Shown piece by piece: positions 14,093 to 25,500 of a DNA stretch of 64,000 nucleotides. The stretch lies in the NCBI GenBank assembly GCA_965235115.1, contig OZ249444.1:15190001-15254000 (forward strand), read 5' to 3'. This stretch comes from Laetmonice hystrix (Eukaryota). The position numbers and the translations under genes were made by a program. Numbering within the stretch: the stretch's first letter is position 1; each line of letters starts with the position of its first letter. The notes under the pieces were generated by a model. It saw only the letters and a program-made list of their open reading frames with translations. It had not been told where the DNA came from and made no database searches.

Positions 14093-15771
14093 CGTCAGCC
14101 CATCCATAGCTGATTTTTTCCCCTGGTTGATTTTTTAGATGTTTGGTTGTATTACCCAACGGCGCACCATATCTCAAAGCTCTTGCTTGCCTTTAGAAAC
14201 GCAGCAGACAACTTCAGGGTTGGAGGCCAAACGCGAGTAGGCCTATATCGATCTACTTGTTGGAGGGCGTGCGCGCGCACGCTACATTGATAGGCTACCT
14301 TGATAAGACCAGCAATGCTGCCACAGTCTTCCCGTTGTGCAGGCCGGATGATGTATTCTGCCATGGTGGCTTCTGCCTGTGCTGGCGTCCCAAAGGCGCA
14401 AAGTCTGGTGCTCTAGATAATTACAGTAGAGGCCCAGCCGACAACCATACTATGGCAAGTCACAAGTGCATTTTAAAAGTTAAAGTTAAGGCCTATGCCT
14501 TTGGGGAAGCAGCCGTCATGAATATTTTAATGTGAACGAGGACCCATATAGTCACTTGCCAGTGGTTGAGAATGAGCGGCCAGGGGGTTAAACTGAAATA
14601 TCTTGGGGCGAGAGGGGGCGATGAAATAGGCAAAAAGGTCAGCTTCAAGGGTGTAGGGCCTAGCGAGGGGGGTTTCCAGGTTTTCCGGACCCCCCCAACC
14701 TAAATTAATAGATAAGCCTAATTAAATAACTGAATAAATAAAGGACTAATATTATTATTGGGACCCCCCCCCCCCCCACACACACACCCACCCTGAGCTT
14801 TGTGAGCATTTTTCAAGGTCGAGCGTTTCCATTTCTAAATGATTTAGAAACCCCTACAAAGAAGTAAATTCGCCCATTCTCTCAGAATTAAACACCCAAT
14901 TAAGCTCACGACACCCTGAATGTTTATTCAGTAATGAAGGAAACAGTTGCTTCTCGTTCTCTTTAACCTAACTTCCTGACCCTCATACTTTGCCCATGCA
15001 TGGTAACACTATTATGTTTACACTTAAGACTCGGGTTGTTTCTGTAGCCATTTTTTTCTCAATCAGCACTCAGTGGACCCTTGCCTATTGTATTTATACT
15101 CCACGTGATAAGTATGGCCTAGTCGGGCAGTGACGCCCCTTACTCCCCCCCCACACACACACACACACTCAGCGCCCCCTCGTGGAGCTGGCCAAGACAA
15201 ACTTAACGTCCTCATCAATAAAGTGGCCGAAATGGACAAACCTCCAAGGATGGCGGTTTTTTTCTGCCCTTAACATTTTGATGTTACGCTGTGTTGGGTG
15301 AGGAATAACAGTGCAGTATAAAAATCTGGCCGGTAACGAGGCAGTAGCAGCAAAATGTGCAGCTTAGAAGTGACATCTACAAGCGTAAGAGGTTTGTAGC
15401 TTTCGGCCACCATACAACAGCATTCGTAAGACTTAATTTGCGCATGCTCGGACCTAGAAACGCGCGCTTCTTCCAACAGCCCATGGCCAGCCAAATGTAA
15501 GAGGACAGTGAGCAAAAGGGTTATGCTCCAATTGGTCCAAAACTTAAAAGAACATGAATAACACTTGGTGCATGCCAGCACACTTGGGCGAGTGACCTCA
15601 CAGAGTGTTACGCCACCTACCGTAGAGCCGTCGCGGGCGAGGGGCGGATCGCTTGGCCTCCGTGACCTCGAAGTTTGGTGCTGAGTAGGAATTGCAGGCG
15701 TCATAGGCCTTCTGGCACGGACCCAGTGTAGTATATAGATGTCGGGAGAGGTCGCTAAGCTCGGACAGAAA

Positions 15772-18700
15772 ATGGTGACAAGGGCTGTGGTTCTGATCAT
15801 CATAACACTCATGGCCCAAGTGTCGGCCGAACCTGGATCTGGTGGTGAGTCCGAGTAGTATGCGCCGGAAGATATTTAAATTGGGAGGGGGGGGGGGGGG
15901 GTCAGGCCCCCAACCCCAGATCCGATACCCCTAAACGGTGCATGTCGAGAGACATTCTCAGTTAAATGGCCACTATAACTTAGACCAAATCCACTGCCCC
16001 AGCTTGGGGGCTTAGTCTCCCCTTGCCCCTTCCGTTGTTCAGATGTCCTTTGCCCCATTGAAACTTGTTTGATTGATGAAGAAACATCTTCTTGCATCGC
16101 CCCAGGTACATGTGCTTGTGTTATCCTAAATTCCAATATGACCTTAAGGCCAATAATCTATTGTCCCAGGTGAGTTGGTGGCCCACCGAGCCCGGCGGAG
16201 TTACTCGCCCCTCAGGGTCGTCTACTTGATCGTGAGTCCCCCACGTTTTCATAGTATACATACAGTACTTCGATAATGAATGGCTTGAAATAGTGTTTGC
16301 CAGATTACTATGGTAATCCCCTTCTGCTTCCTATCATTTCCTGCATCCAGTCACTATAGCTACGGATTAATAACGATTAGTGGGCCATATAAAAACGATG
16401 CAATTGGATTATTTAAGTAATTTAGATGGGTTGCCATGTAATGCCAAGGTGAATGCCCTCTTTCAACGAACATCATTTGAAAATATCACCACGACCGACT
16501 GCGCATTTCCAGTTTCATGAAAGGGCAATGGCCTCATGGTCAGTGATGTTTAATATACGTGTAACTTGCAGAGCGAGCCCTTTGTGATACCCGGGGGTGA
16601 TGGGAGGGTGGTGGGCTATCTGCCCGATATCCTGGACAGGATAGGTCACAAGCTGAACCTGACCTTTGAACTCTACCCTAGTCCTGATGGAAGATATGGA
16701 GCCCTCAACCCCGACGGGACCTGGACGGGAATGATAGGGGAACTCGTAAAGAAAGAGGTAAGCTAGGCCGTGTTTTTCACCTCTGTGCCAATTGGTTTCG
16801 GGGATGGGGAAGCAATGTCGCATAAAGCTCTCTAAAAAACAAATTTCTGTTGAGGGAATTTGTCCCCCTTTTCTCCACAGTACCGCCACATCCAAAAATA
16901 TGTTGTTAAAGTTTCGGCATAACATTTCTAAAATATGGAGAACTGGTCCATGGGTCTACTTCAGTATAATATGTCTCCAAACATTGTCACTCACACGTAT
17001 AAAACAAAATACGTTTTTTAAGAAGTGTTTGGAGCAACTCTTTTTTTGCGGAGTGATGTAACACTACAACTTGTTATTCTACAGAAAGGAGACCATAACG
17101 GGGCAGACGTTGCCCTCGCCGACATTAGCGTAACAGCTATACGGGAAAAGGTCGTAAACTTCGTGAAACCCTTCAAAAACCTCGGCCTCACGGTCCTCAT
17201 TCAGAAAACGCACGTGGCCGAGCGAGACAACAACAAACTCTCCCCGTTCAACATACTGCGCCCTTTGGAGGCGGGCGTCTGGGTCACGTGCTCCATCAGC
17301 GTCCTCATTGTGAGTGTTGGCGTTCTCACTCCCAACTCTCCTCACATGGGTCTACCACGTCTCTGCTTGGCATGGTTCTCACTCCCAACTCTGCCTACAG
17401 AGGTCTGTGCTTGGCATGGTCTCACTCCCAACTCTGCCTACAGAGGTCTGTGCTTGGCATGGTCTCACTCCCAACTCTGCCTACAGAGGTCTGTGCTTGG
17501 CATGGTTCTCACTCCCAACTCTGCCTATAGAGGTCTGTGCTTGGCATGGTTCTCACTCCCAACTCTGCCTACAGAGGTCTGTGCTTGGCATGGTTCTCAC
17601 TCCCAACTCTGCCTACAGAGGTCTCTGCTTGGCATGGTTCTCACTCCCAACTCTGCCTACAGAGGTCTGTGCTTGGCATGGTTCTCACTCCCAACTCTGC
17701 CTACAGAGGTCTGTGCTTGGCATGGTTCTCACTCCCAACTCTGCCTACAGAGGTATGTGCTTGGCATGGTTCTCACTCCCAACTCTGCCTACAGAGGTCT
17801 GTGCTTGGCATGGTTCTCACTCCCAACTCTGCCTACAGAGGTCTGTGCTTGGCATGGTTCTCACTCCCAACTCTGCCTACAGAGGTCTGTGCTTGGCATG
17901 GTTCTCACTCTCAACTCTGCCTACAGAGGTCTGTGCTTGGCATGGTCTCACTCCCAACTCTGCCTACAGACGTCTCTGCTTGGCATGGTTCTCACTCCCA
18001 ACTCTGCCTACAGAGGCCTGTGCTTGGCATGGTTCTCACTCCAAACTCTGCCTACGGAGGTCTGTGCTTGGCATGGTCTCACTCCCAACTCTGCCTACAG
18101 ACGTCTCTGCTTGGCATGGTCCTCACTTCCAACTCTGCCTACGGAGGTCTCTGCTTGGCTTGGCATGCTGGCTGCTGCCCTGCCTTACTCCTGTCGGGGA
18201 CCAGTCCGCTTGGCATGAGTCTCATTGAGCGGTTTCCGGCTCCCTCGCTGGGTGGCTCTGTGGTCGACGCGAGTACTCGCTAGGTGGCTCTGTACCCGCG
18301 TCGACCATAGAGCCGTCTAGCGAGGGAGCCGGGAACCAGCTTAGATTCTCATTCCCAACTCCGCCTATAGGCGTCTCTGCTTGGCATGGTTCCCACTCCC
18401 AACTTTGCTCATATGGGTCTCTATATATAGCCCTGTTCTCTTCCTAATTAATCTCTGCTGGTTCGATCACTTCATTGGAGCAACCAACAGAACTCCCTAT
18501 GAGGGACTTTGGTGAATGAACGAGCTTTAAATTTTGTAATTGATCAGTTTTTGTTTTCCCCTCAGGTTGGTGTCCTACTGTGGCTTAGCAACCGTTTCAA
18601 CCCGTACGAGTGGGGACACTATAATATAGCGGAGCATGGCCGAGGCTCAGAGGACCATGCCGACGCCTTCAGTATCAGTGGCGCCATCTGGTTTGCATTC

Positions 18701-21147
18701 ACATCACTCCAATGGCAGGGCTACGAGAAGGCGCCTCGTTCGGCGGCGTCCCGCTTGGTGGCAGCAGTGTGGTTCATGTTTGTGACGTTGACGTTAGTGA
18801 CGTACATGGGAAGCCTACTCAACCACTTTATATGGGCCAGCACCCTGTACGGCCGTGATTTCTCCCGACCCCCGGCCCAAGACCTCGCCCACCTCGTCCT
18901 GAACGGGGAGTACGACGTGGGCACCATCAGAGGGGGCTCCACCTACAAATGGCTCACGCAGGTGGCAAGGGAAGACATCTACAAAACTTTAAAGGCTAAG
19001 TGGGAAACTCCCCAAGGTAACCGCATAGGAAATTTCAGACGGTTCTATGGCTTGGAGGGGGTGTGGGTCCGTATAGGGGGATGAGCACCGCAACATCTGT
19101 AGGGGTGAACCTGGGAGCCGAATGGGTGGGGGTGGGGGGGGGGGGGCTCCAATGGCAGGCGTAGGGGAGCCCCCCTCTTCTAACTAGTTTTCTTATGCCG
19201 CCATAGGCCTTCTGTTTTTTAAAGAAGCACTCTGCCCAAACAGAGGCTATTCAAACATATTAACACAGTGGCGTATCCAGAAATTTTTTAAGGGGGGTTT
19301 CCGAAGTTTAGGTACTTCAGAGATGGATATTAGGCCATGCTCCTCGAGGAAATTTAACAAAAAGACATCAAATAATGCAATCTCGGGACATCTTGTGGGG
19401 AAATATGAAGGTTTCCTTTGGTTAAAATAATGCATTTTACACCCCATTCTTTTTACCGAAATGTCCTTAACATAGGGGGGGGGGGGGGGGTCCGGGATAC
19501 TTGGAAACCCCCCTGGATACGCCACTGTTCACATATAGGCTACGTCTACTACTTAACATTATTTGCAGGCCAGAAGCTCCTGGCTACTTCCCATGAGGAA
19601 ATACTCCAGAAAGTTCGCAGCGGGAAGGTGGCTGTGATCGTCGAATCGTTGTTTGCGAACCACGCCATGAACCAGCGTCCCTGTGACCTGACCACGGTCG
19701 GACCGACCTTTGCCCCCCGCGCGTATGGTGTGCCAGTGAGGCAGAACCTAGAGCGGGGATTGCTTGACTCTCTCCACCATGCCATTCTGGAAATGAGCGA
19801 GTCGGGCGAGATAGGGGTAATTAAAGCACTACGTACACCAGAATCTTTCAAATAAACTATAAAGCTATCAGGATTGACAATGTTTGCCCCTTTTGACGCC
19901 CTCCCCTTCCATATCCTTGATCCACCGACTGGAGGGATCATATTTGGGGGGCAGACTGAGCTCATAGTTTTGTATAAGAGTCCTAAAACTAAAGGACTGC
20001 TTTCACTAGCGATAGTCCTTGCGACGCCCATGTGATTTGTGATGTCATGGTAGAATTTCAATCTATAATTTTTCCTGGCTGGCCTCCCCTTTTTCTGGAA
20101 ATGGGTTCCATCCTTTAATCCCAAAATCTCAGTAAAATAAAAGGGTCATGCATAGGTCTCCACCGAATATGTTAGATAGACAGGAGTTCTGATGGAACTC
20201 ATTCTTGTTTCACTTAGAACACTTTTATTTAATGTTTTGACCATTGGGAATCGAGAAACTGTAAGTCTCTCATATGTTATGAGGTCAGTAGAAGCGTATG
20301 TAATTAACTAAAAGGGTCATCCATAGGTTTATATGAATATAATGTGCGTTTCTATCAAATATCTATTAATCACAGGCGCTGGAGAAGAGATGGTTCGTAG
20401 ACCGCGGCGAGTGTTGGAACGTGACGCGAATCGAGAAGGAAATGGCACGAACGTCCAAACTCTTTCTCCTCCAACCGCAACAGGTTACAGTATACATGTT
20501 CTGGGGCCCACTCGCCATTCTCCTTGTCGGCGTCGTCATATCAATGTTGATAGGCGTGGCAGAGTTTCTCTTCTTCAGATATCGAGGCCAGGCGAGTCTT
20601 GTTTTAAAAATAACAAACACATTTCTCTAGGTATTACAGGTATATTTTTTATTTTTTATGTCTTGGTGCAAATTCTTCATACCAAATAAATTTATTTTCA
20701 CCGGCCAGATTTCGTTTCAATTTCGCTAAAAAACCCCTTTTGAGCCATAGTATTTTCCATTCATATGAGGGTTGACCTGGTAGTATGAATGTTATATACG
20801 GTATCCGACTTAAAGTTTCTGAATACCTAAAAATGCAAGCTTTCTGGGGGAGCAATAATTACTTCAATACCGTTTATCATTTTGATTCCATTTGCTGGTA
20901 TATGTATACTGTCATCATGCAGTGAAGACATTTCTATAACTTATTATTGAACCCCAAAATGCAAGGTTTTCGGTCGGCCCTTTAAAAATAAAGTCAGGTA
21001 GGATCCTTCGCCCGTGCCTCTAACCCAAGAAAAGTAGGCCTAAAAAGTTACAGTTCCATGCTCTAACAACTATATTTCTCTCTTTTTTTCCAGTATGAGA
21101 GAGAGAACAGACCAGCTGACCCGTCGCTGGAGCCAACTGAAAGCTGA
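15772..21147 (+). CDS. Ionotropic glutamate receptor-like protein lacking the amino-terminal domain, 504 aa; exons 15772-15844, 16170-16231, 16572-16757, 17085-17309, 18566-19016, 19569-19816, 20376-20591, 21094-21147
   Basis: Signal peptide MVTRAVVLIIITLMAQVSA; S1 PLRVVYLISEPFV, DGRYG...WTGMIGELV, ADISVTAIREKVVNFVKPF; M1; pore IWFAFTSLQWQGYEKAPRS; M3; S2 GTIRGGSTY, IVESLF, RPCD, RWFVDRGEC; M4. All phases consistent; last intron is GC-AG. Confidence 0.92.
17322..18410. repeat. 44-bp minisatellite (about 19 copies plus a remnant) starting just after the iGluR exon-4 donor
   Basis: Unit GGTTCTCACTCCCAACTCTGCCTACAGAGGTCTGTGCTTGGCAT with 43-bp variants; source of ORFs 17025-18218, 17314-18228 and 17537-18283. 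Confidence 0.95.
18226..18343. mobile_element. 118-bp palindromic MITE inserted in a minisatellite unit, 9-bp target duplication
   Basis: Arms GGTTTCCGGCTCCCTCGCTGGGTGGCTCTGTGGTCGACGCG / CGCGTCGACCATAGAGCCGTCTAGCGAGGGAGCCGGGAACC; flanks GAGTCTCAT and GATTCTCAT. Confidence 0.8.
19266..19527. mobile_element. MITE with perfect 15-bp TIR CAGTGGCGTATCCAG
   Basis: CAGTGGCGTATCCAG ... CTGGATACGCCACTG; flanks TTAACA / TTCACA. Confidence 0.8.
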
Positions 21148-22542
21148 GACATGGGCGGCTCTGTATACAAGTTTGAAGAATGATACAATTCACATGTATT
21201 CCATATTGATACATACTTATGATACCAAGAGAATACCAACTGTCATATATACTAAGCGCAAAGAGACATTTATTTAGCTTATATTTACGATACACATTGT
21301 CCAAACTCATATTGGAATCCGATACATCATTTAAAGCCCAGATCGAAATATGCCCAGATCAGGATTGGAAGATTGGAGGTCACATAGATTTACATTACAT
21401 AGGCAATGCACCATATCAACACGGGATTTAAGAAGAATGTAGTAATATCATGCCTGTTCATTATATAGACACCCAAAAAAGACATGTTTTGGACACTGCA
21501 CCCTCAGTTTTCAATGTGTCACTTGGGACGATTGGTGTGGGTTGTGGTCTGTGTCTTTCCCTTCGTTGGTTGCATGTCTTGCCTATAGATCCTTGTTGAA
21601 TAAATTTTTCAATTTTACCATTTTACTTGATTACGCCTTGATACAGGCCCGGAGGCTGATCTGAAAATGGGGGGTGGGGGTGGGGGGGGGGGGTGGGGGT
21701 TACTTCAAGCGCAATAATTCATCATTGTAATTTGTCCACAATAGTTCCCGTGTGGCCTGCCATACACTGCGTGAACACCCCCAACTTCACCCAACTGGTT
21801 TTGTGGAGTAGGGTGAGTCGGGGCCTGAACCGTCGCACGTGTGAACAGGTCTAAATTGACAGCCGACCTTAGATGACAAAAAAAACCACGTGTGTGGTCA
21901 GTTTGACCGACAGTTTAGGCGGAAGAGATTCACTGATTGCCGTCGCGATAGCGCCACCATAATATGGTCAATATCATGTTGCAATAGATGTTTTTTATCC
22001 TATCTTATAGAGAGGTTAGAAATATAGGGAGACCGAAACCAAAATGGATTCTCACAGTCCTCACTTCCCTACGGTAGATCACGACTGCACAACCTTTCTC
22101 CAAGATAAATAGAATGGTAACCTAGACAGAAGGTGGTATACCCCTCTGGCTTTTAGCCTGCATTCTTACAGAAACAAAGAAGAAGACTCTAAAACCGTAT
22201 GCTACTTCAAGGACCTCAAAGTACCATGCAAAGGAGCGCTGGTTTGAGGACATTTTCAAACAAAATGGGTAAAAAACCAGGACGTTGGACGTGCAATCTA
22301 AGTAATATTATGACCACGTGGTGGAGCGCATTGAAGCAGAACTGGGGATACCCAGTCGGCACAGGGGCCTATACGTATGGACACGTGGGGTATATGGAAA
22401 ACGTCCACGCTCTGATTCCCATTGGTCATCTGGTATGCTACTTCAGTGGAACGTGACGTTGGATATCGCGTTCACAATCTGGCAAACAGCTCCATGGACT
22501 TAACGTGGATAGAGATCATCCACTGATCTAATAATCGGCACC

Positions 22543-25500
22543 ATGCGGCTACGAGGGTTATCCTTGGATTCATGGCAGCTGTGTATATTTGTATATATCC
22601 TAATTATTCTGTATGAAGGTATGTATCGTCCTACTCTTTTCTACTTCCCTGTTCGTGAGACCGTATATTCGACGTTTGACGTGCGGGGGAAATAAACATA
22701 CGAGCTGCTATACTAGATAACACAGTATGACACAATATGACGTGGAAAACATTTGTTTGAAACATATTTAACCCTTCCGGTTATTTCTGTAAAACAATAC
22801 GGAAATCAAATCATCATGTTGCTCTGGTAATCAGTTCCCTCCAGAATTAGGTCACTCAGATATGTGACCTACAGTGTCTGATCCACCGAAACCTGCCAGT
22901 ATACGTCGGCCCAGTTAGGCCTACAGTTGGTTCAAGGAACCAACCAGGATGTCTAACTAAGATCGTATTTTAAGTTGTTGCGTAAATGGCAGAGGCGGGT
23001 TCAGGATTTTGGAAGGGGGGGGGGCGTGGGGTAGTGGTGAACTAGCAGGGTCTCTACGCGGAGTCTGCGTGAATCATGAACCAGCCCGGGAATGGAGTGG
23101 GAGGGATACAGTGTTAGTGGCATATTTAAATATATCCCATTCACAGTGGGAGTAAACCTGTATATATAGGCCTACATGCTAAAATCCTATTGTATCTAGC
23201 CTCCTAATTGTCTAATATTTGTACAGTTATTGTAGGTGATAATAATTTTTCCTTGGAGGGGGTGGGGGGGGGGGGGCATGGAATGTGCCACTAGTGGTCC
23301 TAGGGCCATTTTCTCCCATAAATTTAAATTCTATCAAGTCAGCTATAGCGAGTGCTACAGTTCCCAAAGCCACCCCGCCCCCCTCCGGGGCACGCAGTTA
23401 AGGTGTTGGCGGGAGTGGAAAGAGGTGTTGGCAATCGATTATTTCGATTATGACGTAAACATTGATGATAACATACATATATGTAATATGTCAGCCATTC
23501 AGATATTTTCAAAATGGAAGGTAAGATCTTTCACCTTGAGATCTGCTCGAATTATATCCAATTGAAAGTGATTTAAGACGTCATAATTCCGTGACATGAC
23601 GTCCCATGACGTCCTTCTTCATATAGAAATCTAGCCATAGTATTGTCTATCTTCTGTCAAAGTTTTGTCTAGATATATTGAAAGATGACTGAGGAACAAC
23701 CTAAAGTAGGTCATTTTGGTGTTTGATCCCTTTATACTCAAGGTCAAAGGTTTACAGTTAAAGGTGAAAGTTCAATAAATATTATTTGCGTGTTACACGA
23801 ATTCGTACGATCTCAGAATCCCATTTTCCGTGTCAGGGGAAATGAGATGCATAGGCCTAATTACCAGACCATGGTTGGAACAGGTCCAGCTGATTAGGAG
23901 ACAAAAATTTAAAGGTGAAAGGAACTGTTTTTAAAAATGTAGGGGCCTAAGGATCCCCCTTTGCAAGGTTATTAAATTACTGTTCTTCGTCACCGTTGGC
24001 CGTCGTCAGTTCCCGATGCAGCCAGCCAAGCTTATCTCATCGTGACAGACACCTTGAGGAACGGCGTGTTCCGAATGGACATCAGCGGGGGTAACCAAGT
24101 GCAGTTTCCGGTTCCGTCTCTAAAGAACCCGATTGGCGTCGGCGTGAACCCCGAGGACAGCAGCGTCTTCGTCACAGAACGAGGCACGTCGGCAGCCAAC
24201 AGCGAGAAATTTATCCTCAAGTACAGCGCCAACGTGGGTAGCCCACGCAGACTGATACTAGATAGAAGTAAGTGCAACTCAGTAGTAGGCCTGTGTAAGC
24301 CCCGACTTACGAGTTGTAGTTGTAAACGAACCGTGACATACAAAAAAAGAGTGTCTTTGTATGATAGAGGCCTTGATTCCGTTACTTCCCACATTCCCGC
24401 TGACAGTCTTCGTGGTGTTGCCACTATTAAACCTGTCTCCCCCGACAGTCTCCGTACTCGATGGTGTTGTCACTATTAAACCTGTCTCCCCCGAAAGTCT
24501 CCGTACCCGATGGTGTTGGCCACTATTAAACCTCTCTCCCCCGACATTCTCCGTACCCGATGGTGTTGCCACTATTAAACCTGTCTCCCCCGAAAGTCTC
24601 CGTACCCGATGGTGTTGGTCACTATTAATCCTGTCTCCCCCGACAGTCTCCGTACCCGATGGTGTTGGTCACTATTAATCCTGTCTCCCCTTGACAGTCT
24701 CCGTACCCGATGGTGTTGGTCACTATTAAACCTGTCTCTCCCTGACAGTCTCCGTACCCGATGGTGTTGCCACTATTAAACCTGTCTCTCCCTGACAGTC
24801 TCCGTACCCGATGATCTTGCCACTATTAACCCTGTCTCTCCCTGACAGTCTCCGTACCCGATGGTCTAGCCACTATTAACCCTGTCTCTCCCTGACAGTC
24901 TCCGTACCCGATGGTGTTGCCACTATAATTAACCCTGTCTCTCCCTGACAGTCTCCGTACCCGATGGTGTTGCCACTATTAAACCTGTCTCTCCCTGACA
25001 GTCTCCGTACCCGATGGTCTTGCCACTATTAAACCTGTCTCTCCCTGACAGTCTCCGTACCCGATGGTCTAGCCACTATTAACCCTGTCTCTCCCTGACA
25101 GTCTCCGTACCCGATGGTGTTGCCACTATAATTAACCCTGTCTCTCCCTGACAGTCTCCGTACCCGATGGTGTTGCCACTATTAAACCTGTCTCTCCCTG
25201 ACAGTCTCCGTACCCGATGGTCTTGCCACTATTAAACCTGTCTCTCCCTGACAGTCTCCGTACCCGATGGTGTTGCCACTATTAACCCTGTCTCCCCCTG
25301 ACAGTCTCCGTACCCGATGGTGTTGCCACTATTAAACCTGTCTCCCCCTGACAGTCTCCGTACCCGATGGTGTTGGCCACTATTAAACCTGTCTCTCCCT
25401 GACAGTCTCCGTACCCGATGGTCTTGCCGTTGACCCGATTACTCGCCTGGTTTACTACACGGATGCTGGGGAAGATTACATCGCTGTCAGCAACACTGAT

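Follow-up and report, generated by a model that had tools for sequence, protein, structure and literature searches.

A 64,000-nucleotide stretch of the Laetmonice hystrix genome (contig OZ249444.1, positions 15,190,001 to 15,254,000; hereafter the window, in whose numbering positions are given) holds, on its + strand at 15772-21147, a gene for a 504-residue receptor of the ionotropic glutamate receptor (iGluR) and ionotropic receptor (IR) superfamily that has no amino-terminal domain (ATD). By sequence comparison, this gene is a new member of a known family. It belongs to an annelid group, here named the QWQG subfamily, within a wider clade of ATD-less receptors. The named members of this clade all come from spiralians, and published catalogues list members under the labels "divergent" or "Clade II" IRs. 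The best explanation as a whole, to which we assign a probability of roughly 0.6, is that a functional gene of the QWQG subfamily encodes the amino-acid-binding subunit of a sensory IR-type channel. A first-pass annotation of the same DNA had presented the product as an exceptional channel, with Trp at the Q/R site and a rewritten gate. For the single gene, our result is mainly a correction of that view, in that its striking pore and gate are inherited and do not represent a one-off rewrite.

Family placement and conservation of the pore and gate

Structure and database comparisons were based on single exons and on relatives as queries. With exon 5, which encodes the pore region, an exhaustive HMMER search returned 439 proteins at E ≤ 0.001, the best being short receptors from three annelids (Dimorphilus, Capitella and Owenia), ahead of receptors of molluscs, a brachiopod and a nemertean; a homologue search from the relative P0002 alone gave 11 proteins. 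No close orthologue of the window protein was present in the protein libraries, where the best matches reached about 51-58% identity over exon 5. A careful tree (IQ-TREE; 63 rows, 452 columns), with which a quick 104-row tree agrees, places the window protein in a subfamily of 15 rows supported at 100/100, to which three paralogues encoded in this genome and Capitella CAPTEDRAFT_218867 (P0010) also belong. This subfamily is nested in a 32-row clade of ATD-less receptors, termed xWQG for its pore loop (support 89/91), and the AMPA-like and kainate-like receptors group elsewhere (100/99), with the window clade excluded. All named members of the subfamily are from annelids, and those of the wider clade are from annelids, molluscs and a brachiopod.

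Both the names given to clade members by NCBI ("glutamate receptor 1/2-like") and the best matches among solved structures had suggested an affiliation with AMPA receptors, or a lophotrochozoan expansion of them. This candidate was rejected by the approximately unbiased (AU) test (p = 1.6e-52, delta lnL 113.6), for which groups were chosen after the tree had been seen, the tree itself having no NMDA outgroup and a single IR25a as its only arthropod IR.

Table S3 of Croset et al. 2010 (PMC2924276) lists the protein P0010 (Capca1|218867) as CcapIR265, and the window gene thus groups with an already named IR inside the same 100/100 subfamily. IRs in the sense of Croset 2010 are restricted to protostomes, have no recognisable ATD except in co-receptors, and have a ligand-binding domain (LBD) without one or more of the glutamate-contacting residues R, T and D/E. 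The first two features describe the clade, given that its named members are annelids, molluscs and a brachiopod and that they have no ATD. The third does not apply to the window protein, in which Ser replaces Thr and the other contacts are kept. Related proteins have appeared elsewhere, as the IR-like "Clade II" proteins without ATD in a spionid annelid study of 2025 (PMC11730519) and as BglaGluR1.1 in a Biomphalaria study, which is 449 residues long, ATD-less, carries R, T and E, and was listed as not full-length (PMC4890853). The kind is therefore already known, but has been filed inconsistently as IRs, as partial iGluRs and as "glutamate receptor 1/2-like" proteins. The first-pass annotation had staked its view on there being no described clade that already shared the WQG motif together with this M3 segment. 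The CcapIR265 subfamily is largely such a clade, with M263 as the feature that it does not share.

When exon 5 was compared with PDB chains by phmmer, GluA1, GluA4 and GluA2 were the best matches, with E values of 1.5e-13 and weaker. The alignment to GluA1 sets SLQWQG on AFMQQG, with W232 opposite the Gln of the Q/R site, and TYMGSLLNH on SYTANLAAF, exactly as the first-pass annotation had read these two motifs. The pore loop, SLQWQGYEKAPRS, is encoded at 18704-18742 in exon 5 on the + strand (W232 at 18713-18715), and the M3 motif TYMGSLLNH (residues 261-269) at 18800-18826 of the same exon and strand (M263 at 18806-18808, N268 at 18821-18823). Trp occupies the Q/R position in all 15 members of the subfamily and in most of the wider clade, the WQG motif is retained in annelids, molluscs and a brachiopod, and the acidic residue at position +4 of the pore is likewise retained.

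Much the same holds for the gate. The subfamily consensus for M3 is TYT(G/A)(S/G)(L/I)VN(H/N/Y)L(F/Y)WAS, or more simply TYTGSLVNH(L/F)(F/Y)WAS, and 14 of the 15 members have Asn where the lurcher site lies; at the third position of the motif, 12 members have Thr, two have Ile, and Met occurs only in the window gene. Judging from these alignments, the sole private change among the odd features of pore and gate is thus the Thr-to-Met substitution at residue 263, a variation on the family gate. At the bundle crossing, the positions that we take to correspond to T617, A621 and T625 in GluA2 numbering are Met, Leu and Ile in the window protein. The motif TYMGSLLNH matches two of the nine residues of SYTANLAAF, fewer than the four or more that Ramos-Vicente et al. 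2018 demanded for AKDF iGluRs (PMC6307864). Within the subfamily, pairwise identity peaks at 62% over the M2 helix with the pore loop and stands at 53% over M3, as against 36-39% in S1 and S2. Such conservation marks the odd pore and gate as a design that has been kept and not as a product of decay. The first-pass annotation had also noted that substitutions at the lurcher site cause constitutive opening. In the window protein, Asn at this site is the conserved state of the subfamily; on the comparative evidence it is a co-evolved family state and no leak mutation. Our literature search found no functional test of clade members and no mention of the WQG motif in connection with glutamate receptors.

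The three paralogues of the same subfamily, L002 (G000:C3:20154401-20157718), L003 (G000:C10:14152589-14155897) and L004 (G000:C6:13305233-13308412), all have QWQG pore loops and M3 segments of the TYTGSLVNH type. The tree joins two of them to proteins of other species, so that the subfamily split before these lineages diverged. In each paralogue the tblastn match breaks just after QWQG, and exon 5 of the window gene runs through this point. The break suggests an intron inside the pore loop, which the window gene does not have and has probably lost.

Architecture and integrity of the gene

The gene model was built from a three-frame translation of 15700-21200, with splice sites set by eye and by phase. 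It comprises eight exons, all on the + strand, with a coding sequence of 1515 nt for 504 residues; introns 1 to 6 have GT-AG boundaries, and intron 7 has GC-AG. Exon 1 (15772-15844) carries the start codon and the signal peptide (MVTRAVVLIIITLMAQVSA...), and a signal peptide that leads directly into S1 is common to the relatives. An alternative in-frame ATG at 15739 stands immediately 3' of a stop codon and would add 11 residues (15739-15771); a signal peptide is present with either start. Exon 2 (16170-16231) encodes the end of a short propeptide with the furin-type site RARR (residues 31-34, 16187-16198) and the first S1 strand (PLRVVYLI). The S1 portion of the LBD continues in exon 3 (16572-16757; Pfam PF10613, E 1.6e-12) and ends in exon 4 (17085-17309; PF10613, E 3.4e-8), which also holds the ligand-contact Arg R127 (17142-17144), the pre-M1 segment and the first half of M1. 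Exon 5 (18566-19016; PF00060, E 3.7e-14) encodes the remainder of M1, M2, the pore loop, M3 and the start of S2. Exon 6 (19569-19816) contains S2 with the ligand-contact Glu E358 (19643-19645) and Cys371, exon 7 (20376-20591) the end of S2 (RGEC, Cys428) and M4, with the GC donor at 20592, and exon 8 (21094-21147) a short cytoplasmic tail (YERENRPADPSLEPTES) and the stop codon. The Pfam domains Lig_chan-Glu_bd (exons 3 and 4) and Lig_chan (exon 5) reproduce the layout of the iGluR/IR superfamily, in which an S1/S2 domain (PF10613) is split by PF00060, and M1, pore loop and M3 are followed by M4.

The GC donor of the last intron is supported by the relatives: with exons 7 and 8 joined in phase 0, the protein regains the C-terminal tail that they conserve. 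This tail, located 3' of M4 (21094-21144), has the pattern Y-x3-N-x-P-x-G-x2-L after (K/R)G(R/Q/K) and is common to P0001, P0002, P0003 and P0006. It might be a trafficking or anchoring signal, and we know of no named motif that fits it.

Every motif that the first-pass annotation had listed was located in the rebuilt protein: the ligand contacts R127 in AIREKV, the GST motif and E358 in VESLF, the disulfide pair of RPCD and RGEC, and also RARR, PLRVV, SLQWQG (W232) and TYMGSLLNH. The set of contacts for an alpha-amino acid is retained, with R127, S122, S307-T308 (GST, the S2 contact; 18938-18943 in exon 5, + strand) and E358 all kept, as is the S2 disulfide pair C371/C428. Position T480 of GluA2 is represented by Ser (S122), and P478 by Asp. 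Across the subfamily, the S1 ligand Arg occurs in 15 of 15 members of the motif table, and Glu or Asp stands at the position equivalent to E705 in 13 of the 14 members aligned there.

The gene product has no ATD and consists of a signal peptide and a short propeptide, then S1/S2 and M1-M4; the rebuilt model upholds the first-pass annotation on this point. A tblastn search of the 64-kb window with 164 iGluR-family proteins found nothing outside the gene at E < 0.01. The queries included 34 proteins of 800-1150 residues, most of them ATD-bearing, and the ATD-bearing queries align to the window only from S1 onward. A hidden Markov model (HMM) built from the first 440 residues of the 34 long proteins detected no ATD exon in the whole window, its best match outside the gene having an E value of 0.38; the 15.7 kb upstream of the gene were thus free of any ATD-like exon by both tblastn and the ATD HMM. 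The nearest full-length relatives are 470-560 residues long. The sources of P0158 and P0002, two such relatives, are contigs the size of transcripts (2043 and 1708 nt, respectively). In each contig the start codon is preceded by in-frame stops, so that the ATD-less frame is 5'-complete. The window gene therefore departs from canonical AKDF iGluRs, in which an ATD (PF01094) precedes S1.

A basic site ([RK]x[RK]R, RxxRR or RxxKR) lies between signal peptide and S1 in 8 of the 11 subfamily members with complete N-termini, for example as RKKR, KVKR, RPKR, RSKR, RITKR, RIVRR or RRVRR. Such sites occur in 1.9% of 30-residue windows across the collected proteins. By this comparison RARR is no accident and represents a conserved site of the convertase type. 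For the three paralogues, tblastn in the 7-8 kb of upstream DNA gave S1 exons only, with no signal-peptide or furin-site exon.

The gene is, as far as its sequence can tell, intact and functional. All eight exons are open, every family-invariant residue is present, and the nine allelic variants listed in exons comprise seven synonymous and two non-synonymous changes, I203T (18627, in the M1-M2 loop) and V355M (19634, three residues before the ligand-contact Glu). These variants come from three DNA runs of one sample, in the form of contigs, which are silent on splicing.

The introns contain repeated DNA. A minisatellite in intron 4 (17359-18163, unstranded) consists of 18.4 copies of a 44-bp unit with 95% matches, each unit ending in a pyrimidine-rich stretch and CAG that resemble a 3' splice site. 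Identity with a second minisatellite at 24401-25428 was considered and rejected, as the two sequences differ when compared. At 19240-19633 (intron 5) and 20028-20421 (intron 6), contig word depth rises to 10^4-10^5 in all three DNA runs, compared with about 30-60 at flanking exons; both stretches represent dispersed repeats of very high copy number that have inserted into these introns.

Candidate function and competing explanations

If the gene indeed encodes a subunit of a sensory IR-type channel, then the ligand of its product would be an amino acid or something closely analogous, as suggested by the kept Arg, Ser/Thr and Glu for alpha-carboxylate and alpha-amino groups. During secretion the subunit would undergo cleavage by a proprotein convertase. 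Of the four subunits that line the pore of a cation channel in sensory cells, it would then provide two, and the remaining two would come from IR25a, a co-receptor with a canonical gate that is encoded in this genome, a pairing proposed by analogy with insect tuning IRs. The IR25a orthologue (L015, G000:C5:4286715-4290005) is 46-73% identical per exon to barnacle IR25a and has Pro at the Q/R position (SLTPQG/GGGEAPR) and the gate TYTANLAAF. Among the three possibilities raised by the first-pass annotation, the chemosensory subunit is now the best supported and the non-conducting subunit is disfavoured, the pore loop being the most conserved part of the protein; the third had been a glutamate-binding subunit with unusual gating or permeation.

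Several observations weigh against this proposal of a sensory subunit. The heteromer with IR25a is an analogy, and the best-conserved part of our protein is the pore loop, unlike the highly divergent loops of insect tuning IRs. Moreover, a complete amino-acid-binding triad with a conserved pore would fit an autonomous channel equally well. An exclusive grouping of the clade with IR25a, represented by the single barnacle sequence, is weakly disfavored (AU p = 0.027, delta lnL 17.8), and therefore the label "IR" is a matter of nomenclature and not of shown monophyly. Removal of a short propeptide by a proprotein convertase would be the obvious reading of RARR, but it is drawn from the motif. Finally, no RNA run was found to cover the locus.

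One alternative is that the protein forms a minimal autonomous channel gated by glutamate or another amino acid, as homotetramers or as heteromers within the family, with a cation filter lined by Trp, in neurons or in other cells, and with no need for IR25a. The complete binding triad and the S2 disulfide speak for such a channel, as do the strong conservation of pore loop and M3 with the acidic +4 residue kept, the AMPA receptors as closest solved relatives (E 1.5e-13 for exon 5, 1e-62 for the relative P0158), and the presence in the genome of at least three paralogues as possible partners. We nevertheless consider this alternative unlikely, though worth serious attention: members of the clade are catalogued as IRs and treated as candidate chemoreceptors, the AMPA affiliation is strongly rejected by the AU test, and four Trp residues at the apex together with bulky Met, Leu and Ile at the bundle crossing would be expected, from GluA2 structures, to narrow or close a homomeric pore. 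A bolder reading is that the QWQG subfamily is a distinct and unrecognised channel class, furin-processed, ATD-less, amino-acid-gated and independent of IR25a, in which a conserved ring of Trp above the acidic site acts as a working, non-canonical selectivity filter and an M3 of the TYTGSLVNH type as an alternative gate, Met263 being a natural gating variant. This we regard as doubtful.

It is also conceivable that the protein passes no current at all and serves as a binding or auxiliary subunit, that is, as a modulator, scavenger or sensor comparable to the kainate-binding proteins (KBPs) of vertebrates. The ATD-less architecture of about 500 residues is that of KBPs, and the apex residue and gate are unusual; yet an unused pore should drift, whereas among annelids no other part of this protein is as well conserved as the pore, and the WQG motif persists in annelids, molluscs and a brachiopod. 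We judge such a role improbable. Least probable of all, and in our estimate very much so, is that the gene is mis-modelled, with upstream ATD exons splicing into exon 2, or that it is a young pseudogene. Suspicion might arise from the search for RNA runs, which found none at this locus, from a Met at the gate Thr that is unique among the sequences compared, and from the non-canonical GC donor. However, the upstream DNA and the rest of the window contain no ATD-like exon, and the transcripts of relatives, complete at the 5' end, likewise run from signal peptide through basic site to S1. The eight exons are open with family-invariant residues intact, synonymous variants outnumber non-synonymous ones by seven to two, and the GC-AG join gives back the conserved tail.

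At the level of the family, a clade of very short receptors keeps the amino-acid triad together with a strictly conserved Trp at the position that, in AMPA and kainate receptors, governs conductance and the permeability to Ca2+, and its annelid subfamily adds a conserved convertase site just before S1. A size of about 500 residues makes these proteins attractive for expression and structural work on how an aromatic apex is tolerated in an iGluR pore. Moreover, the proteins of this clade are candidate amino-acid chemoreceptors of marine worms.

Comparison with known receptors

The AMPA receptors GluA1-4 are the best matches among solved structures over LBD and transmembrane domain from end to end, as judged from the relatives aligned to GluA2. 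Shared features are the NPYEW and PRS motifs, the Arg/Thr/Glu triad, the S2 disulfide and the acidic +4 residue of the pore. Unlike GluA1-4, however, the window protein has no ATD, has Trp for Gln or Arg at the Q/R site, and retains two of the nine SYTANLAAF residues. The KBPs of frog, chick and goldfish are ATD-less members of the iGluR family of the kainate class, of about 490 residues and with an intact binding domain. They resemble the window protein in their size without an ATD and in that intact domain, a comparison made by description only. The ATD was probably lost independently of KBPs, because the named clade members are all spiralians. The Lurcher allele of GluD2 (A654T), like equivalent lurcher-site mutants, affects the same position, the second Ala of LAAF, as a single gain-of-function mutation. 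In contrast, an entire subfamily carries Asn at this position as its conserved wild-type residue, together with other changes in M3, and constitutive opening therefore cannot be inferred from it.

A 2026 preprint on insect IR structure describes tuning subunits in which SYTANLAAF is largely degenerate and the Q/R residue is divergent and often hydrophobic, the co-receptors keeping a canonical gate (bioRxiv 10.64898/2026.09.30.755715). Tuning IRs such as IR75b, seen by cryo-electron microscopy in the IR8a/IR75b structure, share with the window gene a degenerate SYTANLAAF, a hydrophobic Q/R residue, the lack of a full ATD, the ligand Arg, and an occurrence in protostomes that also bear IR25a. 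They differ in having an N-terminal region of about 200 residues (half an ATD in IR75b), in place of the roughly 20 residues that precede S1 in our protein, and in a pore loop that is highly divergent and not, as in the QWQG subfamily, the most conserved segment.

CcapIR265, from the same 100/100 subfamily, and the spionid Clade II proteins are likewise ATD-less and about 500 residues long and have in common with the window gene the QWQG pore loop and an M3 segment containing Asn. CcapIR265 has lost the Glu and Ser of S2, whereas the window gene keeps the full amino-acid triad, and the window gene differs from both in having Met in place of the gate Thr.

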